The position numbers and the translations under genes are program-made. DNA of 37,557 nt from Hyphochytrium catenoides (taxonomy: Eukaryota; Protista; Hyphochytriomycota), in NCBI GenBank assembly GCA_900088475.1, contig FLMG01002207.1, positions 1 through 37,557 of the forward strand. Reading direction: 5' to 3'. This document shows, piece after piece, positions 1 through 29,524 of the stretch. The notes under the pieces were generated by a model that saw only the letters and a list, made by a program, of their open reading frames with translations, ran no database searches and was not told the origin of the DNA. The first letter of the stretch is position 1. Every line of letters starts with the position of its first letter.

Positions 1-1452
1 TCTGTTAGCGCGCCGGTTGGTACGTCGTGACCGGACTGCTCTCAACACTAGTCGCTACCGCTTTCTTCGCTTACGCGTCTGTCTTTCTGCCTGCAGAAGG
101 TCCGTGAATTCAGAAACGTTCTCTGTGTTGGATCTCCCGTACTTTAGTTTCTGTATTAGTCCATGAAACTTTTCTCGCACCTCTTCATTATCAGAATAAT
201 GTTAGTCAGATGAAGAACATAACTATCGACGATGGAGATTGCAAAATGAGATAAACTGTTTGCCAATTTAGAAGTGAAGGACACTGAGGGATGCTAGGAC
301 GTAGCACCAAGAGCCTTTACATTACACAGGAGAAAGAAAGAAGGATGTAGGGGAAGCCGCTGCAAAGAGAAACAATGAGATAAGAGGGGAATGTTGAGGT
401 TGAGTAACATTCTGGGAGCGATAGAAACGTAGGCCGGATGAAGAAAACAAGGCTGCTGCTACTTCAAATCGGGCTAACAGATGGGGCAGATATGCAGAGG
501 GAGGAACGGTACGTAACTGAAGATCTCACAATAGAAATGTCAGGAGAAAATAGAGCGATTGTCTCCGAGGACCAAAAACAGGTAGAGAATGAGAGACTGA
601 AGGAATGTAGAGGCGGGCTGCTGGAGATGCGTGATGCACGAAATGGGAAAATGAACAGCGGTAAAAGAAGGTGAACACAGGAGGGCCATGATCATACTAG
701 AATATATATCGGGAGAGAGAGGAAAAGAGGAAAAAGAGAGAGCAGAAAGATTGATGGACGAGAGAGGCTAGATAAAGCTAAGGAAATGAGAGCGGTGTCA
801 AGTCATTCTCATTATCGACATTCACTCCTCAGGAGTTCTTCGCCGTCGCAGGCTAGCCCTGCTTGCCGGCCTGCTGCTCGTCACTCCCGCATCTCCTTGT
901 CCTACGACTTTTAATATCCCTGACTGCGTTGTCATCATTATTATTGGTCTGTGGCTTCTCGCTTCTTCATCATCCTCCTTCTGACTCCCTCATCCCTTTG
1001 CGGCGCTAATAAACCCAGTTTTTTTGTCACCTGATGATGGAGAGCACTGTTTGAGCTACGGAAGGACTGATCACTGCGGGGATTATTTTTGAGTTTAACA
1101 AGCACAACATCATCCACCCTAAGATCCATTCTGCTCACCATTACAGCAAGCGGGTTTGCTTGCTTCCTTACTTCGTCCGGTAACATTTGCCTAACTTAAT
1201 GTTAAGACGATTTGAAATTTTGTAGACCCTAGGGGCTACAGCCGCCAATAAGCTAAGGTTAGCCTCCTCTAGCTGCGGGGTCAAACTGGAGCTTGACAAA
1301 ACTAGCCTGAGAGCTCTCCTTGCGGCATAGCTGGGTCAAGCGGGAGGAGGCTCTTGGGGGCCAGAGATTAGGTCGTCGTAGCAGTGGGTTGTTGTGTGCG
1401 CGCTTAGCGTGCGTAGCGATTGTTCGGGAGTGATAGTTTGAGAGCCTCCTGC

Positions 1453-1508
1453 CTGCTTGGGCCCTACCATTCTCTCCTGCTGCCTGCTGCTTGGGCCCTA
1501 CCATTCTC
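1453..1508. repeat. Direct duplication of CTGCTTGGGCCCTACCATTCTC (22 bp, two copies)
   Basis: Seen directly at ~1453 and ~1487, at the end of the YR reading frame. Confidence 0.85.
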
Positions 1509-1990
1509 GCCGCCGTGTCTTCCATCTGAACGGGTTGATAGGCCGGGAAGCCTTGGTAAGCGTCAGAGTGCCAGGATCCCAAGAGCTTGATGTTTAGGTA
1601 GCCCGACCCTGCATCAGTGTAGTCGCGCGTGCTACCTTCAGGGAGTGTGTTGAGTAGGTTCGGGCGATTTTCTGCGGGCTGCTGCTGCTTGCTTCACCAG
1701 CTTGCCCACGGCCTCCGCGGTAAAAGTGATCTCGGGCGGTCCTATGGCTAACCTCCCGCTCGTCGCCTGGGTCAGGCCCAGTGAACCACCTTTAGAAGAC
1801 AGCCCGCTTTGACAGGAGGGCACAGGAGAGAGTGTCCTGACCTCCGTAAGCGACGTTGAGACCCTCTCCCGATCTGGTCGTCGTTTTTGCCGCCGCGTAA
1901 ATTGATGGAGACTGCCTCTGTCCTGGTACTATCTCCCCATGGTCTGCCAGCGCAGTCCCAAAGCCGTAGGTCGTTGATTCTAAGAAGGAA
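1500..1990 (-). pseudogene. Degenerate tyrosine recombinase (catalytic half) of a DIRS/Ngaro-like YR retrotransposon
   Basis: Manual translation across frameshifts: LRINDLRLWDCAGRPWGDSTRTEAVSINLRGGKNDDQIGRGSQRRLRRSGHSLLCPPVKA (~1987-1805; SKTDQ and CPV motifs), AEAVGKLVKQAAAA (~1718-1677), YSTHSLKVARATTLMQG (~1657-1607; HSLRxGxAT box) and NIKLLGSWHSDAYQGFP (~1594-1544; GRWxSDAY box). Motif order and spacing match YRs of DIRS-group elements. Confidence 0.85.
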
Positions 1991-4900
1991 CCATATCGTC
2001 TGCAGTAAGCAGCGAAAACGCCAAGCTGCCCAGTTGACTGTTTCTACTGCGCTGCACGGGTGTAGTCAGCTGTGCCTCCCCTTTCCGTTGCCACTGTGTC
2101 TAGGTTCTGGGCAGGGGCTGAGGCTGACCGAGCATATCTGAGACTGAGGACGCGTCATCCTCTAACCGCCCCAGGAAAACCTAATAACGCCGGATATTTC
2201 GCCTAATCTATTTGCCACCTAGATGTCAACCTAGGTGTCAGTCCCAGTGGCAGCCGATTTACTGCGGTAGCTTGGTCCCAGGCTAAGCATTCGTGACTGA
2301 CTATAGTCCTTAAGCAGCGCCAGCTTTGCTGTCAGTCTGTCATTGCCTAGCGGCGCTGGGACCAGTCCTGCCTGCAATTTTGTTAGCAGAGGGTCCATAA
2401 ATATCAGGAAGAGGGTGGGAGGGGCATAATAGAGGTCGCCTTGTCGCACTCCACTCCATACTATTGGGAAGACGCTAGTTAGTCCCGCTCCTGCCATGGC
2501 TCTAGATGTTGCCTTGTTTCCCAATTGTCCAACGAGACGGATAAAGCATCCGGGCATCTTAAGTCTTCTCAGAGCTAGTTCCATGCTCCAGCACTCTTAC
2601 CGAGTCGTATGCCTTGCTGATCTCAGTGTTTAGGATATGAAGCCGGCAGTCTTTTTCCTTGTTCTCTTCAATTACTGCCTTTGTCACCCAGCTGACTTCT
2701 TCTGCCGACCTTCCCTTTAAAAAGCCTCGTTGGAGTGGGCTAAGGGGGTCCGTTGCTTGCCTGGCCTTGCTAATGCATCTGTTGAGGATGGCAGTTAGTT
2801 CTTTTACTACTGTCTCTAGTAGGGTAATGGGTCTGTGTCCCTGGTCTCCTGGTTTAGGGATGGGAAAAATTATGCCTGTCGCGAGCTCTCGGATCATCAG
2901 GCCTGTTCGGAGACATGCATCTAAGATGGCTCTCACTAGATCCTTGAATATTGCAGGTAGGCATTTTAAGGCTATTCTTGGGATCGTGCTCGGCTTTGGG
3001 CGGTTCCTGTCGGTCCGCTAAACATTTGTGCTCTCTCTTCATCTGTGATGGGTCCCATCAGCTCTGCCCATCCCTGATGTCTTGCCACAGTTTCAGGCCT
3101 AAGCATTTCCCACTGTTCTCTGTCTGCCTGATCCTGTGGGGGGTTGTTTGCAGGTAGTAAGCTTTCGTTTGGTTTCTCAGCACCTTTACCTGCACCCAGC
3201 TGGGTGGGGCCTTTGCCGTGGCTATCCAGTCCTCGAAAACCTGTGCCACTCCTGTCAGCTGTTCCTCCTCCGTCGTAATTGCCGTTTGAGGTTCTCCTTG
3301 CTCATAAAAATATGTTACAACTTCCATTGGCTTTACTCGGGCTCTTGGTTTTACCAGCTTCCCAAATCTAGTCAGAGCCTTTCTGTCGAAAAGTTTTCGC
3401 CTCTTTAACCTCATTTCTCTCAGCGCTTTAAGGAACTTCGTCCTTAGAAGGCGGGAGATCTCCTGTGAAATTGAAGCTGCTATGTTTGTGATAGAGGCAT
3501 GCCAGACGTCACATTGTACCTTGTTAGGCCCTCATGGGTTTGCGGGGAGTTCGGGCACTCTTACTCACTCCTATATTTGCTGCCTTCTGGACTGTCTTTC
3601 GCACTTTCTTCGCCAGTTTTGTCGTGTGAGTGTGAATAAAGTGATTTGGCAAGGTTTCCCAGGGATCGTATGTGCCCAGGCCTCCTCTGTGTCTGGCTGT
3701 CGCCGGATTGCTCCATCTGCTCAGTAACGCACTAAGTTGTCTACGTACCGCCCTTAGTTTGTTGGCTTCGTTGCTCCTCCTTCTTGTTTGTCTCCCGGTG
3801 GTCTGGCCTAGGGCTTGTTTGCCTGCTTCCATCACCGCTTTCTCTAGGTATTTCCATGCTCGTTGTATCTTGCTGGTCCATTGCGGCTCCTTGACCTCCA
3901 TCACCTGTTCCAGTAGAGGTGCAGACACCTCGTCTAGCCGATCTATTACCCCTTGGCACTCCTCCCTGAGTCCTTTCATAGTTCCCGAGCGCTTCGCTTT
4001 CCAGGGCATTATCTGTTTCATCGTCCTCCTTTGCTTGTCTGGGCTTTGTAAGGGTAAGTCTGCCCCATCTCACCTTCCCTGCTCTTGTGTAAGTGGGAGG
4101 TGCGCGTGGTGGATGTCTAACTTGCCGTCTCCCGCCTTCTGTTGGCCGTGCTAACGCTTTCCCTGGTAGCAATGCCCCATCATTCCCCAGTATTATTGTT
4201 TCTGCATATGGGAAGTCTGCTATCACTGGAGCGTGGTCGCTTCTGTCTAGTTTCATTTTGGCTATGAAAATGCCGCTGCATAGCTCAGCCAGTAGAGGTG
4301 AGGCCCAAATTTGATCTATTCGAGAGGCTACCTGTCCTCCGCGAGTGGACGTGTATGTCCAGGCTTGCACATATGAGTGTCTTAGCCTAAAGAATTCTGT
4401 CAGCTCCAGACTCCTTAGGACGCTTGTCACCGATTCATGGTGTGTGTCTCCATTGTTCAGCCGGCCCGATAGTCTGTCTAGGGGTGTGCATACGCTGTTA
4501 GTATCTTCTAAGATCAGGGTCTCCATACCTCTCTCATGGGCAAGTTGGCATTGTATTCTCATTTCCGTCGCCAGAGCTCTTTGTCTGACGCCTAAGTTGC
4601 CTTCCCCTCTCTGGGTGGATGGCACTGCCGCAGTGGCAGCACTTGCTGCTCCGTATGCCACTATTATTCTAACTCCTTTCCCTCTAGGGTTCGGCTTAAA
4701 GGTAACCGCCAATAGTCTGTCACTTGCTGCCTCTTTGCCGTCTCTGATGAAACGGGACCATGGTTCCTTTACCAAACGACCCACTCCTGAGAAGGCCCTT
4801 GCCGCCTTGGATGGCTCCGGTATCGCCCATGTTAGCCCATATCCGTTCTCCTCTGCCAACTACTGCTCCGCCACTCGTACGGTCCCGGGTGCTGCTTTTG

Positions 4901-5195
4901 TGAGTCTATGTTCTGTGAAGCCTAGGAAATTGACTGGATGTGCCTTCATGAAATAGATTAGGTCAGTAATCCTTCCCTCACTAGTGCCATCTTTGAACCC
5001 TCCACAGTTGTTTACTGTGGCAAGCCTCAGACGTCCTTCCGCTGCTAGAGGAATCACGCAATCATCCCCATCGCAACTTCGTGGAGGGTCCACTGCTCCA
5101 CGGGGTTGCGTTATTGTCGGTCTCGGGGTAGTAGCTGCCTCGGGCTCAATGGCCGCTGCTGCTGCTGCTGGTGATTGGTGTTTCCTCTCCTGTGT
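1991..5195 (-). mobile_element. Decayed non-LTR retrotransposon (LINE) ORF2: APE endonuclease + reverse transcriptase, with stops and frameshifts and truncated at the 3' end
   Basis: APE motifs: LRLATVNNCGG, LGFTEHRL, ILEDTNS (GDFN box), WTY..SRIDQIW, SDHAPV (ORFs 4860-5093 and 3741-4859). RT motifs: PIPKPG..HRPITLL, LQRGFLKGRS, EISKAYDSV, GVRQGD..PTLF (ORFs 2559-2936 and 2231-2584), and GSLAF[SLLT]ADDMV at ~2030-1989. In-frame TAG at 4860-4862 and several frameshifts. Confidence 0.93.
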
Positions 5196-12297: not shown

Positions 12298-14364
12298 CTA
12301 CATTGTAGTTTCGCACGACGGGTGATCCAGAAAGCCCACCATCCCGGTAGCAGCTCCAACCATACTTCCACCGATACCGAGAGCGCTAGCACCATACGCT
12401 AGGTGATTACTAGGCTTGTGAGTGCTAAGCCCTTCGGCCAATGCTTTCGATCTCTTCGCAGCTAGGCCCAAGGTTCCACCTGCAGCGCCAAGGGCCAATG
12501 TTCCAACCATCGTGCCGACATAGGCAGAAGTCAGCCTTGAACACATACTCTTGTCTTTTGTGCAAAGAATGCCGCAAGAGTATGGCGCGTAAGCGGGACA
12601 CTGCTGCCAGCAGACAGGTCCATTGCCAGTGAAGCCTGTGTTGCATTTATTGTAACATAGGCCTGCCTGGTTTTCTCTGCCATCGTCACAAAGCTTTGGA
12701 ATTCCTCGGGGAGGTCCTCCGCCCTCATATTCCTTACCGCAGAAGAGACCGCCGTCCTTGGTATGTTCTGGGCACTTTGGGGCGCAGAGACAGCACCCGT
12801 TGGGTTCCCAGCCTTCAGGGCACTTGGCGTAGTAGAGCAACCCATACTTCTCACAGGTACCCGCTCCACCATTCTCTCGCTCACAATCTTCCCTGGCGCC
12901 CTCCAGGCTGAAAGGTCTGTGTCCAAACCTCCAGGGATAGCCTTTGCGGTGTTTTCTGCCTATTGGCTTCCAGCAGGATGCACCGTCGTCTCTGAAGCCT
13001 TCAGGGCACTGAATGTTCCGCCTGCACCAGCAGCAACCCACTCTGCTATATCCCTCTTTACATTTATCATAGCACAACGCACCAGAAACCTCTTGGCCTT
13101 CAGCGCAGCGCCTTGGAATGGTGCCTACACCTCGCGGTTGAGAGAGCTTCATGCAAGCCACAGGTGAATCCGCGGACCTTCTCGTCGAGCTGGGTAGAGT
13201 CATTGCTTTATGATGGCGCTGCTGGCCACTATTACTATTGGTCTGATTGGTCCCTGATGGCGCTGCCCCAACACTAAGAGCGAGTGAAAGAGAGACGGGT
13301 GTAGAACTATTAGAACCATCTCTTAGCGTGGAGGATGGAGATGATGGTAGAAGCTTAACCGCTTGGTGCTGATCACCATTTGGAGGTGGCGCGGCACCCG
13401 GTAAATTGATAGTAAGTGTCACGTGGCTCCCGCCTCCAATTGTCCGAGGGTCACTGGGTGGTAGGTTCAACGTCAGCGATAGACTACTACTGCCTTCTGC
13501 TCCAGGTAGCGAAGGAGGTAGATTGAGCGTTAGGCTTACTGCACCTTGTGGAATGGCCGATGCAGCAGAAGGCGGAGGAGCAAGAGGCAAAGAGTCAGCC
13601 CTCTTTGCATCATTATCATTGCTCCTATCGGGCGAGCTATCGGCTATTGGAGTCCCAGGAGCTGGAGGAGCTGCAAAGTTAACGGTCAACGCGTAGGCGG
13701 AGGGAGTTCTTGCTGGTGACGGTGGTTGATGATGAGGAGGTAAAGGGGAAGGGGCGATGGGCAGAGAGGAAGCGTCACTTCCATTCGCTTCTCTTGTTCC
13801 TCCTTTGGTCATGGACGCAGGTAATGGCGCTGCAGCTGGTAGCTCAACTGTGGAGTGCTTTCTGGCGGTCTCCTCGGTAACTATAGATTGATTCCACAGC
13901 TGCTGATCGCTAGTAGGGATCGAAGAACTCTTAGAAGGATAATTGGAGTCTTTACCCTCATCATCTTCTTCGACACGTTCTTCATCGTCTAGTCCTTCAA
14001 CTTGTCTTCCCTCCTTTTCCTCTTTCGCTTCATCTCGAAGCAGTCTTCTTCTTCGGCGATAGCGCGTAGTAGTCGGAGCTTTCCTTTCCGGAGCTGGCAT
14101 ACCCTGTGTAACTTTGTTTTCGGTGTCTATCAGGAGCTGACGATGAGCATCTAGGTCCCCTTTACCAGCGTCAAAGGCGTCGTTATGAGGCCTTTGGTGC
14201 CTGTCTCGAACAGTGTCAGCCCTCAGCTCTTTCCTCCCTGCTGCCGCAATCACTGCTGACCCTCCAATAAGGAGCCATAGGAGAATAAAGTGGCCGACAA
14301 CCTTAAGGGCTTGAAGTATACTTCTTCTTCTCGCAGACAAGGTAGCGTCGATCATTATGCTCAT
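12298..14364 (-). CDS. Intronless secreted or membrane-associated protein (~688 aa): signal/TM segment, Pro/Ser-rich linker, Cys-rich repeat domain, Gly-rich hydrophobic tail
   Basis: Long open frame. The track start at 14385 is TTG; the first ATG is at 14364. Hydrophobic VVGHFILLWLLIGGSAVIAAAG. Repeated C..G....GALCY.KC / CP.G..D.G..C.K units at 13158-12540. Tail GTLALGAAGGTLG...GIGGSMVGAATG. Confidence 0.9.
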   Translation of the reverse strand: MSIMIDATLSARRRSILQALKVVGHFILLWLLIGGSAVIAAAGRKELRADTVRDRHQRPHNDAFDAGKGDLDAHRQLLIDTENKVTQGMPAPERKAPTTTRYRRRRRLLRDEAKEEKEGRQVEGLDDEERVEEDDEGKDSNYPSKSSSIPTSDQQLWNQSIVTEETARKHSTVELPAAAPLPASMTKGGTREANGSDASSLPIAPSPLPPHHQPPSPARTPSAYALTVNFAAPPAPGTPIADSSPDRSNDNDAKRADSLPLAPPPSAASAIPQGAVSLTLNLPPSLPGAEGSSSLSLTLNLPPSDPRTIGGGSHVTLTINLPGAAPPPNGDQHQAVKLLPSSPSSTLRDGSNSSTPVSLSLALSVGAAPSGTNQTNSNSGQQRHHKAMTLPSSTRRSADSPVACMKLSQPRGVGTIPRRCAEGQEVSGALCYDKCKEGYSRVGCCWCRRNIQCPEGFRDDGASCWKPIGRKHRKGYPWRFGHRPFSLEGAREDCERENGGAGTCEKYGLLYYAKCPEGWEPNGCCLCAPKCPEHTKDGGLFCGKEYEGGGPPRGIPKLCDDGRENQAGLCYNKCNTGFTGNGPVCWQQCPAYAPYSCGILCTKDKSMCSRLTSAYVGTMVGTLALGAAGGTLGLAAKRSKALAEGLSTHKPSNHLAYGASALGIGGSMVGAATGMVGFLDHPSCETTM

Positions 14365-15374
14365 GAAGTCATTGGAGAAGCCCAATGGGCCTGTCCGGTA
14401 GTAAAAGCGCCAACTTAGCGCAGCGCGGTTCTGTCCATGACGGGCGGAATAGAGGGAATCCGAAGAATAGAGACGACCTCAGCTACCGAAGCGCATAGAC
14501 GCAGAATGAGGAAGTGAGGAGGCCAATGAGGAGGAGATTAGAGAAAAGGTCGCCGTTGACCTTGGAAGTACCGACACAGAATGGCAAAGATCTTCCCTCC
14601 TCCGGGAAGGAGTGTTGCATATCCAGCAATATGCTCAAGGCAGTTAAATTAAGTCATGTATGACCTCCTACGAGCCCTGAGGCGCCAGCGGTCGTTATTC
14701 AAATAAGCGGATGAGTTCCCGATGCCCATCGCCTAGGTCATTCTTCCCTACCACTATCAGCGGAAGACGAACCGGAATAACTGTCCGAACAAGTGTTGAC
14801 ACGAATACCGATTATCCGGAACTTCCTCTCATGCCTCTGAAGAGGTGTTGGAGCAAGGTGTCTTCGTTGTGAAAGTCCTGGTCAGGAAGTCTAACAGGAA
14901 TCTTCTGTTGATGATTGCTAGGGGGGAAGCTGCTTGTCCCTTCATTCCCACTCATTAGCATTGAAGGAAGAAGACAGTGCGAATGACAGCTGCACTTGCC
15001 AATGTGATGTTTCAATGATCTGTCCCTTATAAGGAACGGCTCCGCTCCAGCTGTTGGGAAAGGCAACTAACTAGCTGTTCATAGTGATGTCCATAGTGAT
15101 ATACCTACCCCATAGTGAAGCCACAAAGGGCATCGAAAGACGCTGCCCAAGGGCTTTCCTTCCTCTGCTCCTCAAGTTGATGCTTTGCTGCAGAATATCA
15201 CGGCCATCAATGAGATTCCCTGTGGCGGTCTACCATTATACCAGCAGACATAGATAGTGGTCTTTCCGCTAACCTGGAGAGTGAATCTTCTCGAAAGGCG
15301 TATTCTTCTGTATCTTGGAATAGGTAGTTCTACCGAGCCGGATTAGCTGTCTACCTCCGTCTCTAGTATGTGCA

Positions 15375-22433: not shown

Positions 22434-25400
22434 ATGAACGCTGCCTGGCTGAGAGATGCCGAGAGGACTCTCGCCCTGAGCAGGGCCCTACAACCAGAAG
22501 AGGTCATTACCTACCCTCTACGAGCCTCCCGACTCAGCCCAACCGCCGGGTGAGTGACCAACAGCTTTCCTGTTGTCTCTTAGGTCACTTCTAATCATGC
22601 TTTCATCAAATCTCCTCTCTATCATGACCTTCCCCACCAAAACTCCGGGCTTCTTGCTCCCTGCACCTGTTTATCCATGTAGAAGGCGACCGAGGGACTT
22701 CATAGAAGAACTCGAGACTGAACATAGGGCACGAGAAGCATCACGAAAGCAGCACGAGGTAAACTGGCACTATGTTCTGCAGCCCTGGTATCTCCCTATC
22801 CTCTTCTGATGCGGTCCATCTGCCCCCTCCTAGCTTGCTGCCACCATTGACTGACTTGTCAATCTACTTTGACCTCCTTCCATTCGAATCCGGCAGGTAA
22901 GGGGAACCCATTTGGAGAGGGGCTTCGATGAACTTAAAAGCGACAGTGGCAACACATCGGGGCCTGATGCTAAGACAAAGAAGACTCTGGAACCCTCTTT
23001 ACCTTCAGTGCCTCCTTCGAGCGCCACGCCCGACAGCGATGGCTTCACGGTTTTGCCTGATATTACCGACTGGCGGCGGCCTAGCAGCGCAGAGGTAGGG
23101 AACCTTGACCTCAACAGTCTTTCTCTCAAATTGTCTTATTGTCTCTGTGTAGCCTCAATTTGCTAAGAGCTCAAGTCATTTCGCGTCAGCTCTATCTCTA
23201 ACAAGATCAATGACTCTTCCCTCCTGTGGCTGCAGATAAAGGAAAGAGTTGAGAAGTGGACGCAAGAAAAAGCGGCTAAAGACAAAGAATTGCGCGCCCA
23301 GCGAGCGGTAAGGCGTCGGCCTACCTTCATAGATACCTGACGCGGGCCTCATACCATATTTCTTCAGAGAGCTGAGTTCCGTGCGAAAGAAGTGCAGAAA
23401 CAAAAACAAGTGCAAAGACGAGAAAGACTTCGACTTCGGCTTGAAGCAGGACCCATCCCGAAGCACGTAGGGAAGGCGAAGAAGCCACCATCCAAGGGAT
23501 TAAAAGGACTATTGGTCTCTCCCTTGGCGCGGTGAGTGTGTCACTTCAGTCATCTACCTCTCCGTGCTCCCTTCTACCTCATTTCTCTTCTCCATCTCCT
23601 AGGAGAGACGCCCATTTCTTCTCCCCACCTAAGCTATCTTCAATAGAGTTTCTAGCCATCTAGCTCTCCGATAGATCCCTTCGTCTCAGTTAAACCTTTG
23701 TGACTGATGCCTCGCTTGTACTGTGCAATCAACAGATCCGCTGGTGTACAGTCTTTCTCAGAGCTGCTGCCTGCCAAGAAGTCAGTCAAGACCTCCAGAG
23801 AGCTCATACTCCAGAGGCAAGGATCCGGAGAAAGCAGCGGTGTAGAAAAAGTACGAAGTCCAAATGTAGGAAGTCGAGAGCTGGCAGAAGCACTTGATTG
23901 CTTGGCAAGTGTACAGTACGTATCACCGTTCTTCCTCTACATCTATCACACATTGGCCGTGCCAAGGCTGCATCTCCAAGCTTCTTTTCTACCTTGCTCT
24001 AGGAACTTCAGCGATACTGATCTACGGTGCATCCGTGTCTGACATATAGGGAAATGCTAGAGCGGGAAGAGGGAAAGAGCGCTCTCCTCAAGCTCCGGCT
24101 GCGGGAGGATCCTTCTCTTGGGCTCCAAATACTTGCGGCCACGATCCGCCTCCTGTTACCGCCTACCTTGGCCACCAGTTCACCATCGTCCTCCACTTCT
24201 CCTCTACCACATCAGAGATCTGGCTCCCACAACAGCCCTCTGGAACCGCTTTACATCTCTCCTCTCCCCTGGTCGGAGGCGGGTCGCATCTTCAGTAGTA
24301 GACCGATGACCTTTCTTCATACGTTTGACATCAATAACATTGAGCCCGATGGATTGGCAGCCATTTGTATAGCAGCCAATAACCGACATTTCCACCCCAA
24401 GGTATATTTCACTCTCTCTGTCCAACAATCTCTTTCTCCACATCCCCATTCGTCCTAGCTCTCGCCTTTCGTTGAGCCATCTAGCTGATAGATGCCGGGT
24501 CCTTTGAGGTCAGTCAATTGCCTTGACGACGATATAGTCCTGGCACAGAACCATCTGTCTGTCAAAAATGATGTGCTACACCTCGCTTTCTTTGCAACCC
24601 CTTCTATCATGACCAGGGATATTTTGCTCCTTGCTCCCACAACTATGGTCCTTATTGTTCCTGTCTCCTGCCAATCCCTTCAATAGCTGCTCGCCAAGGA
24701 ATCCGTGCTTGCATCAAAGCTTTGTCAATGGATCCTCGAGATAGCGCGCTACCACGCCCTACTGCCACCTGGAACAGCCAAAGCCTTATGTGCTGCGAGC
24801 CCCAGTAAAGGAACAAAGCTACGGAACATGGGAAGTGACGGAGAGTTTGAGAAAAAGCTTAAAAGAGCGTCTTCTCTTTTCCCAGTGATGTCACTCCTAT
24901 CGAAAGGCGCCGGAGAGAGACGGGCAGCTCAGGTCTTGTTGTCTTGTTATATTTATCCGGCTGCTGTGCGAAAGGTGACGCGTGTAAGGATAAAAGACGG
25001 CTATGTACCTGAGAGTGGACGCAAAATGAAGACTCATATCAGTAGTCCAACTGACAAGGTGATGGTCACTCATGTTCTTTCGCTGTAGACCTATGACCCT
25101 TGCTTCTAACACTCTGATCTCTGAGCTATTATGTTTTGGCTCTCCTCCGTTGTCTCACCGAGTCCCTCTCAGCTCCCCCGACAGGAGAAGTGCCTTCCAC
25201 TAATAGTTAGAGAGAGGACGGGTTCTCACGACAAGGGAGAAGAGCGTGTCTTGGTAAGTCCGTCTAACTCACTTTCAGCCACCGATTATTACCTGGCACA
25301 AGGACAACGATGAGACGTATTCTTTCTTGTCACGTGTTCCCTTATAACCCTTGAACCTGCCACCTCAAGCTTACCGCCTATGCGTCACGTTTCCGCTTAC

Positions 25401-28400
25401 ATCTACCTCTCCATGTGGCAGTCTGAACTGTCGTCCACACTCGTGGATCAGTGCTTTGAGGCAAGCGCGTTGGCATTCTTAGGCGCGGAGTTATTATCTG
25501 AAGCTCTATGTGATTACATCGTGCAAGACGTGCTCTACTCTGTCATGAGTGTGAACCTCGGTCCCCGTTGTACTACTGAAGATGTTGCCCCGTCATCTAT
25601 CGGCTCGCCTTCTCAATCCCAAGGTAAGTAGATAAGAATAACATCGTACGCATCTTCCCGTTTCGGAGCAGGCATTGCATCTCCGCGCTCCTGCTGGAAC
25701 TTTTCCTAACATTAGACTGGTCTTTCGTATCTTCCGGCTCTTTAGGTGGACCGAGAGAGACCAAGAAGTCAGATGGTGAGAGAACGTCCTCGCCCAAATC
25801 GCCTTTAGGTAGTTATCGGTTAACTGCGAGCAAGAGCGGCAACAAATCGCAGATGGCACGCTACATCCCTTGTTCCTCATCCTCGGACACCACTTTTGCA
25901 TCGTCTTCTTTCTCACCTTGCATGTACCCAGAAGTGGCGAAGGCCCTGGGATTAGCTGGGATTGAGCCTTCGGCGCTTGTTCCCACCATTCCGCCACCCA
26001 CTCTCCCGTCATCCCCATTTTCCCACTACATGTATCCGCAAGTGGCAGATGCTCTGCGTTTCTCTTGTCTACCGTCGTCCGCAGTCAGCTGGAATCATGC
26101 TTCGACATCGACTCCTATCCCTTGTTCGTTGAACGATGTCTCAAAAACGTCAAATGAATCTACCCCTAGATCGCTATCTGAACGAGGTAGAAAAGTAGAA
26201 ACGAAAGAACGAGCTGTCACGTCAGCACCACGCCCGGAAGGAGTAGGCACCCCCGGACACTGTCACCGTGAACTCGGTGCTGGACAAGAAGAACCTGCTA
26301 CAGCCGGCGTTCTCGACGTCCAACTGACTCCAGCAGCATCTTTCCCAATTGGAAATGCTTCAGTGCCTTCCACAGTCTGCATAGTGGAGTGTGAAGCGGG
26401 GGACGAGACAGAGATTACAAAGGCTCAAGTCTTGCCAAGACCTGACGCCGAAGTAGATGAAGATGGGCAGAAAACACGAAAAGAAAGAAGAGCGCAGCCA
26501 GGCAACGTCACACTAACGCAGCCAGGCAACGTCACACTAGCGGAGGAAGAAAGGGAGAATATAGCGGGAGCTCTGGCCAGGGCATGGATCAACCAACATC
26601 TCGAGCAAATTGTGTCGGACGTTATCTCTCGGTCGGTCGCAGCACTAGCTGCACCATTGGCTGTCAAGGAAGAAGAGCATTACACTGCTGCTGGAGCTCA
26701 AGCTAGAGTGGGCGGCAATGACGAGGCTAGAGCGGTTTCACGTACGGGAGATAGGGAGCACCAATCCGGACAGAGCTGCACAGACTCAGCTAGTCTGAAC
26801 ATGGAAATTGAAGAATCTAAAGGAGCAGCGAACAAAGACGACATCATCCGAGGCACTACTGCTTGTCTGCTATCAGCAACTGCGATAGCCGTAGGCGTAG
26901 AATTAGCGTTACGGCTTCTTTCGTCCGCTTCATCCTCACAACAACCATCATCCTCAGTTCGTGCCTGCCAGACTGCTCTCTCCCTCGAGAAGGTGCCTGA
27001 GCCTGCTGCTGTCGTCGACTCGGGCGACCAGGAAAACCTATTGATAGTGTCACGGAAAAGTGAGGAGGCCGATGGCACGACGGAGAACTTTCTCCCTTTG
27101 GCAAGCTTGCCCTCATCCTCTCCCCCCCACTCGTCAGCCGCTGTTGAACGCAGAGTGGCATACGAGCGGGTAGACGTAGTAGTTCAGGTACCAACAGAGG
27201 AGGAAGTCCTTGATGATGACCCAATACCAAGGCGGACAAGTGCCTATGAGGCTGCTACATTGGACGGAGGAGGAACAACTGCAGGAATAACCACGGCGGA
27301 CGGACAGGGAGCAAACAGTATACTCGTAGTACCAGCAGTACTTCTATCCCCTTCTTCCACAGCCAACGTACCGGGTGTCTCCCTCACTTCTTCGCTTTCT
27401 TTATCTCCTGCGAACGGGTTACCCTCGTCCTCCTCTGTCCTTTGTTCCTCCACAACTACGACGGCACCTCGTACCAGCACAACTGCTACCGAGACAACTA
27501 CTGTTTTATTACTCGACAGTGCTCCTCCCAGTGCTGAGAGCTTATTATTACTCCCGGACGAGACAGTACACGGCGCCCAACTGTCAGCAGATCCGCCGTC
27601 TATCCAAGGCTTAGGCTTGCAGGCAGAAGAAAAGAGGGGAGACAGAGAAAAAGAAGAGGATGTAGTTCTAGGACTTCCAGACATGTCACATTCTCTAAGC
27701 GGTAGTACTCTTAACCACGCCAGAAATAGTGACGAGGTCCAGCATGATGACATCACCGGAAAGCGCGTAGAAGAAGGGGATGGGCGCACTATCGCTGTCG
27801 ATTCTGAACGACAGATCATATTTTCTCCTTCCGGTTCCTGTCAGGCTGATGTCTCTCCTCAACCTCTCCTGCGCCATCACGGGTGCAATGTGGTCGCTCA
27901 TCGGGTGGTCTCTTTGGCTTTTGCGGAAGGAGTTCGGAAGACTCGGGAGGTTTTGCAAGGGAAGCTGGAACAATGCCAGGAGAGCGGAGGCCCACAACGT
28001 GAACAAGAAGACGCGAAAGTTAGTTCTAGTCAAGGGTTGAACGAGACTAGCCCTGAGTGTGAGCTCAAGCTGGAGGATAACGGAGCTACGTCATCACTGT
28101 CTTACATCAGTGGCGTTCCATCAAGAAGCAGTGATGACTTAACGCAAGCAGTGGTTGACCCCAGTACCGATAGTAGACATCCTTCAAGTCCTCGTTCACT
28201 CCCAACCGGTCCTGTTAATGCTAAGAACATGGAGCAATCCTCCTCCACCCTCCTTGCCCCTCCGTCGCACTACCTCTCCCTAGCCCGCGGGTTGGCAGAA
28301 GATAATATCATAAAGATCAGCCGCGTCGCATTGGAGACAGCGACACAAGCTGGGAGAAGAGTATCTGACTCGTCGGTCCTCCCTTCCCACTCGTCGGTCG

Positions 28401-29524
28401 TTCCTTCTCCTCCAATCTCTCCAACTCCTCCTCCAGTTGTTTCAACTCTATCCCAGGTCAGCTCTGCTAGTTACGAGGCACAGGTCGGCAAAGATGAGAT
28501 GATCTCACTCCCTGCACTGGTCTCTCCAATCCAAACCTCATCTTCCCGCGCCACGCTTAGTGACCGAGATGAAAGAGCTTCGACGGCGGTCCATAGTATC
28601 ATTCAGATGGCGCTTGTCTCCGCAACAAAGTCAGCAGCCGCTTGCATTCCTGTTACCAGTACCCCTAACGCCCCATCTTCCAGCCACAGCGAGGAGGAGA
28701 GTCATTTCAAACCGACCCTACCGAGCACTAAGGAAACAAGTCAAGTCCCTTCCACTTCTTCCCCGGCCTCTCCTCTTCTGGCTGGCGTTGACATGTCTCA
28801 GGTCCTTGCAAGGGAAGCCGTGCGTAACCTCACAGCTAGCGCCTTGCGTTGTGCCGTGGTGCAGCAGTCCTTAGGGATTGGTCTCTCCACTCCCGGCATA
28901 AGTTCCTCAACGTCTTCGACTTCACCGTCTCGTCTGGGACGATCGAAGAGTCTAAGGGCAAGCAAAAGAGAGAGGAAAAGGAATGGTGAGGATAATGGAG
29001 ATGAGGGTAGACCCCGAGCGAACACTGCATTACTCGCTGGCGACCGGCTTCTGTTCTCTCTTTCAGCCCCAGATTCTCCCTCGCGACGTGCTCTTTCTCC
29101 TCCGAGGCGGCAACAGGTAGTCCTCAACCCCAAGGGAAATCTCTCCGCTCGGATGAGGCAACGAAAGAGATCCAACTCTATCCCGCAAGAGATCACCAAG
29201 GTAGATGAGATAGTTCTTCAACAGACCGCACGGGAAAAGGAGCAGAAAGAGAAGGAGCAACTCTCCTCTTCTTCTTCTCAACCTTATCCTCCAAAGCCGA
29301 AGGTCTCCTTGCCAGTCATCTTAGAGTCAAAGGCACTGTGGATCCCTTCCCCTCTAAAGAGGAGGACCATGTCTCTCCCTGTCATCCTGGAAGACGGTGC
29401 AAGCAAAGCTCTGGAAAAGGCTCATCCTACTTCTCCGTCACCGTCTGAGGTTCCCACCGAAGGGCAGAATGATGAGATGGACCTGCCAACCAAACTTCCT
29501 GCGGACGTTCAAAAATCGCTATAA
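22434..29524 (+). CDS. 11-exon ~1863 aa protein with an isolated dynein-heavy-chain-type microtubule-binding domain and a ~1200 aa disordered tail
   Basis: Phase-consistent GT-AG model: 22434-22549, 22683-22758, 22897-23094, 23236-23307, 23368-23531, 23736-23915, 24050-24401, 24687-25058, 25173-25253, 25422-25623, 25746-29524 (5592 nt). The last exon contains the 1223 aa ORF. An MTBD-like sequence spans exons 7-8. The start codon is the least certain part. Confidence 0.8.
26494..26540 (+). repeat. 24 bp in-frame tandem duplication (QPGNVTLT/QPGNVTLA)
   Basis: GCAGCCAGGCAACGTCACACTA occurs twice. Confidence 0.9.

Follow-up and report, generated by a model that had tools for sequence, protein, structure and literature searches.

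The candidate gene and its surroundings

Contig C369 of a 61-Mb genome assembled in 4759 contigs carries, on the forward strand of the 37,557-nucleotide stretch analyzed here (the window), a predicted two-exon gene followed by a long open reading frame (ORF) on the same strand (Table 1). The first-pass annotation, made from the DNA letters, had quoted two exon peptides joined across a GT...AG intron, and what it described is confirmed at the level of the letters: positions 24054-24401 and 24687-25085 (+) translate to the quoted peptides exactly and in one frame, and the proposed intron between them has the letters and the frame first described for it.

Table 1. Features of the candidate gene and the ORF downstream of it, in positions of the window.
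Feature	Position	Strand	Description
Exon 1	24054..24401	+	116 codons, counted from the first ATG
H1-H2-like block	24075..24158	+	Exon 1 residues 8-35, aligned to profile positions 9-36; -0.1 bits, P 0.056 (HMMER)
S/P-rich insert	24159..24269	+	Some 37 residues between H2 and H3; disorder predicted
H3-H5-like block	24270..24401	+	Exon 1 residues 73-116; W..A, FL..FD.NNI, F.P
Proposed intron	24402..24686	+	GT at 24402, AG at 24685-24686; 285 nt, phase 0
Exon 2, H6-like start	24687..24767	+	S..A..LC.W.L....Y; strongest part of the match to the microtubule-binding domain
Exon 2, remainder	24768..25088	+	Open frame to the stop at 25086-25088; P-rich at first, not coiled coil
1223-codon ORF	25853..29524	+	765 bp downstream of the exon 2 stop

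The open frame that contains exon 1 spans 24021-24455. An AG at 24048-24049 permits an alternative internal exon from 24050, and the gene could start at the ATG at 24054 or farther upstream. If the intron is read through unspliced, a stop is reached at 24456, and thus the last helix is joined to the rest of the domain only by splicing. The proposed intron reads AAG/GTATAT ... CAATAG/C (slashes mark the exon borders) and has a pyrimidine-rich tract ahead of its acceptor. For comparison, introns were located in nine to ten real dynein genes of the genome via the exons that encode their microtubule-binding domains; they read AAG/GTA or AAG/GTG ... YAG/G and measure 101-311 nt. In form and length the proposed intron fits these real dynein introns and therefore looks native. 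An intron position common to the candidate and the dynein genes was considered and rejected, because the nearest one, on contig C523, is one codon off and too loose to count. That locus (L018, G000:C523:40900-43200) is a genuine multi-exon dynein gene with a phase-0 intron at 848-1025 of the locus; within the microtubule-binding domain its intron lies after F+4, and that of the candidate after F+3.

Exon 2 possibly ends at the stop at 25086, or else splices on, from possible later donors at 24974 or 25058, towards the ORF at 25853-29524. Several frame-compatible donor/acceptor pairs exist beyond exons 1 and 2, and none can be preferred. A frame as long as that of the downstream ORF would not stay open by chance. 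Its sequence is rich in S, P, and T and disordered, with short amphipathic helices, and neither a Pfam domain nor a homologue was found for it; the ORF may represent either later exons of the candidate gene or a separate neighbor gene.

Two further ORFs were noted on the opposite strand. A 371-aa ORF at 3741-4856 (-) matches Exo_endo_phos weakly and below the cut-off (E 0.011), which fits a retroelement endonuclease noted at 1210-5195. A 695-codon ORF at 12298-14385 (-), without a Pfam domain, is unexplained.

Resemblance to the dynein microtubule-binding domain

The spliced peptide had been taken for a microtubule-binding domain (MTBD) of the dynein type. At least 15 loci of the genome itself match Pfam MT (PF12777), and so the organism has a full dynein set, from which profiles could be built. 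In an MTBD-only HMM made from 33 contiguous MTBD pieces of these dyneins, with nothing joined, exon 2 residues 3-25 align to profile positions 97-119 with 18.0 bits (P 1.4e-7) and exon 1 residues 73-115 to positions 50-93 with 6.9 bits (P 3.7e-4). A third and much fainter block precedes these in exon 1 (the H1-H2-like block of Table 1), and in it the dynein 'PP' turn is replaced by D-P-S. Taken on its own, exon 1 is a weak match to the MTBD profile. The three blocks follow one another as in the profile. At the exon boundary no profile position is skipped: the last residue of exon 1 and the first of exon 2 are neighbors in the profile, so that the junction is exactly in register. Leaving the two non-canonical MTBDs out of the profile changed the result little.

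Other alignments place the exons in the same way. With hhalign against an alignment of six intron-less dyneins from this genome over their stalk and MTBD (A1), exon 1 residues 69-113 fall on columns 141-186 and exon 2 residues 4-26 on columns 193-215, collinear and with no gap over the junction. Against an MTBD-only alignment (A2), the first 30 residues of exon 2 are recovered with 92% probability (P 7e-7) and exon 1 with P 0.024. When eight dynein ORF pieces were compared with the window by tblastn, three of them independently matched the H6 site, and nothing else was consistent.

The first-pass annotation had suggested PF12777 as a check, and no match was found: run exon by exon, neither exon nor any of three sub-pieces matches this profile (cut-off 24 bits) at E up to 10, and none of the 47 pieces returned by a six-frame scan of the genome with PF12777 comes from contig C369. 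A phmmer search of exon 2 against all PDB sequences gives a single match, to the last helix (H6) of the dynein-c MTBD 2rr7, with an E-value of 0.33. No homologues of exon 2 were found, a language-model search of the ESM Atlas with it gave no usable match, and no paralogue of either exon turned up in the genome.

The helices predicted for exon 1 can be set beside those of a dynein MTBD. AlphaFold models exon 1 alone with low confidence (pLDDT 47), placing helices at residues 2-18, 20-34, 73-82, 84-90, and 98-112 and disorder at residues 33-75 (pLDDT below 50). A true dynein MTBD of this genome, modeled with pLDDT 90, has helices at 9-16, 23-37, 45-53, 55-63, 72-82, and 97-119. Carried over through the profile alignment, the five helices of the low-confidence exon 1 model lie within 1-4 residues of dynein H1-H5, and H6 of the dynein model corresponds to the start of exon 2. 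A Foldseek search of the PDB with the exon 1 model (pLDDT 47) found nothing. The stretch predicted to be disordered lies between H2 and H3, the place of the 'flap' insert that many axonemal dyneins have (PMC6629372).

The first-pass interpretation holds up in part, and descent from a dynein-type MTBD is among the parts that are supported. Three collinear blocks, a junction in register, the match to 2rr7, and predicted helices that coincide with those of a confident dynein model speak for it, but exon by exon the candidate stays below the Pfam threshold, and no orthologues were found.

Searches with exon 1 brought up a different reading, in which the candidate would be a degenerate ankyrin-repeat protein. 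No real relative of exon 1 was found among 1.84 billion (1.84e9) representative proteins; the three matches obtained are all repeat proteins matched many times over, and one of them is an ankyrin protein. The nearest language-model clusters of exon 1 are also ankyrin repeats (score 0.96), DARPins head the PDB matches of its C-terminal part (E of 1-2), and the start of an ankyrin repeat shares with exon 1 a 15-residue likeness (D-G-x-x-A-x-x-x-A-A-x-x-x-H). However, the language-model placement comes with low recognition and few features in common, and 12 near-identical repeats inflate the E-value obtained in the library search. A profile made from those 12 repeats matches just these few residues (15) at 2.7-3.2 bits (P about 0.005) as a model chosen after the fact, with P 0.1-0.5 for the other pieces. 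Pfam Ank matches neither exon nor any sub-piece, and unlike ankyrin proteins the candidate has no tandem 33-residue repeats. The case for ankyrin falls well short of that for the MTBD, and we consider the ankyrin reading highly improbable.

Controls and chance level

How far the profile scores exceed chance can be judged at two scales. At the scale of the window, exons 1 and 2 are the best two of 1201 six-frame segments scored with the MTBD profile. Among 5000 shuffles preserving composition, none reaches the two stronger block scores (maxima 7.1 and 4.1 bits), while 157 reach the score of the H1-H2-like block. Natural peptide segments elsewhere in the stretch do no better, since the stronger scores are reached by none of about 4600 segments of 30 residues and none of about 2700 (2730) of 47 residues. 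At this scale, then, the resemblance to the MTBD is more than chance.

At the scale of the genome, the picture depends on what is counted. The full exon 2 reaches 13-14 bits. Read on a genome-wide E-value scale, this score corresponds to about two chance matches per genome, and exon 2 alone therefore proves nothing in a genome-wide scan. The configuration at this locus is a more specific one: a second piece immediately upstream on the same strand that scores independently and matches the preceding part of the domain, a good donor in register, and a third, weak block in its proper place. Chance configurations of such a kind are expected about 0.001-0.03 times per genome, a figure that is a rough product of P values and not a calibrated statistic.

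These numbers bear on the possibility that an H6-like motif occurs by accident in non-coding DNA or in an unrelated ORF specific to the lineage, with the intron picked so as to make the motif fit. Patterns of this kind were sought genome-wide, where the H6-like piece alone is expected about twice, and at 50% GC many frames stay open for 130-145 codons. Evidence that exon 1 is coding cannot be drawn from a homologue, as it has none, or from codon log-likelihood, which we rejected for this use because it is positive for every open frame and does not discriminate. Yet three blocks, each aligned separately, are collinear and join precisely at a good GT...AG intron, the segment that ranks second in the window is the exon just upstream of the top-ranking one, the predicted helices coincide with H1-H5, and the configuration as a whole is rare even by a rough estimate. 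We regard a chance resemblance, including an intron chosen to suit it, as quite unlikely.

Absence of the motor and the stalk

The annotation had further described a protein with no motor, and this is supported: around the locus there are no remnants of AAA modules, a P-loop, or a stalk, and none of AAA modules or a stalk in the rest of the 37.5 kb window. Dynein ORFs that span the linker to AAA5 match no part of the window besides the H6 site, and a profile of the full stalk matches only the H6 piece. The neighboring ORFs have no Pfam domains, and Walker A patterns occur three times in the window, at scattered places and about as often as expected by chance. Downstream of H6 the remainder of exon 2 scores P 0.19 and does not match the stalk profile; it is P-rich after H6 and has no CC1/CC2 coiled coil. 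Together these results support the absence of a motor from the predicted gene.

A rival reading takes the two exons for a relic, a decaying or exapted fragment of a dynein MTBD segment. Such a relic could take the form of an unexpressed pseudo-exon pair, or of helices that have been kept while microtubule binding was lost. The divergence is extreme and takes the domain below the Pfam threshold, the PP turn is gone, a long low-complexity insert is present, no orthologues or paralogues were found, and the dynein stalk that controls affinity is absent, all of which speaks for a relic. On the other hand, neither a frameshift nor a stop interrupts the roughly 139 aligned codons of the two exons, and both splice sites are intact. 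In net charge, the three blocks also fall inside the range of real dynein MTBDs, although this says nothing on binding. Either form of relic seems to us unlikely, if far from negligible.

A motor-less MTBD gene elsewhere in the genome

Contig C1946 of the same genome carries a clear case of a motor-less dynein MTBD gene. Its 988-codon ORF (L026:2819-5785; G000:C1946:30318-33284, +) matches Pfam MT with 61 bits, and the match covers only the MTBD part of that profile (positions 98-209). The flanks of the domain within the ORF are disordered and K/S/P-rich, and no homologues of 543-1729 aa were found; a homologue search with the C1946 MTBD region was empty. The best single match of the candidate is to this MTBD and not to a canonical dynein, with 26 identities in 93 aligned columns, and its H6 finds the C1946 MTBD by BLASTP with an E-value of 2e-4. 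The existence of a motor-less MTBD gene raises the prior for a second, more diverged copy in the genome, and the two loci together suggest more than one redeployment of the MTBD in this lineage.

Paralogy of the two loci outside the MTBD was considered and rejected, there being no significant similarity between them. The ORF at 25853-29524 (+) and the C1946 ORF (L026:2819-5785) both contain helices with a (I/V)(V/I)xx(x)(V/L)xxx(V/A) pattern, and in their best mutual HSP (E-value 0.043) two amphipathic helices of this type are aligned with each other. The helices of both recall AKAP-type docking helices for RIIa/DPY-30 domains, a likeness that is presumptive and our own reading of the sequences.

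Two other loci came up in the MTBD-only search as partial profile matches that are not in the PF12777 scan, one at G000:C4409:34995-35147 (+) with 23.5 bits and the other at G000:C4384:382974-383168 (-) with 25 bits. These could be divergent dyneins or further motor-less copies.

Proposed origin and role

We consider it likely that the two exons descend from a dynein-type MTBD and that they are fast-evolving and motor-less. They would then represent a strongly diverged copy of the MTBD of a dynein heavy chain, with exon 1 encoding H1-H5 and, at the flap site between H2 and H3, a disordered stretch of some 37 residues, and with exon 2 encoding H6. Most likely, the MTBD-coding part was duplicated either from a dynein gene or from the other motor-less MTBD gene of the genome, and the duplicated segment would have landed in a lineage-specific, mostly disordered protein.

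Whether the predicted two-exon gene encodes a working, motor-less domain of MTBD origin is a more evenly balanced matter, and we see the chances on the two sides as equal. Because there is no stalk to shift the helix registry, such a domain could act only as a passive grip. A grip of this kind would hold the candidate protein on microtubules, perhaps flagellar ones. The first-pass annotation had proposed a microtubule-associated protein that would bind at the dynein site on microtubules or compete for it. The sequence shows the resemblance, the collinear order, the register across the junction, and the lack of a motor; this role, like the expression, the fold, and the microtubule binding of the candidate, is something we infer.

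A broader scenario can be drawn more tentatively. A flagellated, stramenopile-like microbe may have evolved a small set of motor-less proteins in which the dynein MTBD serves as a passive anchor, and the candidate locus would be a fast-evolving member of this set. In this member, a long disordered scaffold bearing amphipathic docking helices would be held on microtubules by the anchor, possibly where dyneins bind too. Taken as a whole, with all of its parts required at once, this scenario is possible but doubtful.

To our knowledge, descriptions of the dynein MTBD are confined to its place at the stalk tip, and we found no description of a motor-less MTBD copy in the literature searched. If true, a stand-alone MTBD would add a new type of module to those that associate with microtubules, and it would test binding without the registry control that the stalk exerts. 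As an example of the kind, the candidate is weak and second-tier, being an orphan below the Pfam threshold, and the gene on C1946 shows the kind more clearly.

Comparison with the C1946 gene and with dynein heavy chains

The candidate and the gene on C1946 both have A-S-K-L-C-x-W in the MTBD. In both, the domain would sit in a long disordered protein without stalk or motor, the extent of the candidate being putative, and both loci have short amphipathic helices in disordered sequence. The C1946 domain differs in being significant in Pfam (61 bits) and in lying within one exon.

Compared with the MTBD of dynein heavy chains (PF12777; 2rr7, DNAH7 MTBD), the candidate has its predicted helices in the same order and spacing, with the W of H3, FD.(D/N)NI at H4-H5, F.P, and S..A..LC.W(V/I)....Y in H6. 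From FD to C.W the spacing is 41 residues, the same as in one dynein of this genome, and a variable insert is found at the H2-H3 flap site, as it is in dyneins (PMC6629372). The insert itself is unlike the dynein flap, as it is low-complexity and about 37 residues long whereas that of dynein is a short beta-hairpin. Also unlike dynein, the candidate has no CC1/CC2 stalk, AAA+ ring, or PP turn, and its domain falls below the Pfam threshold.
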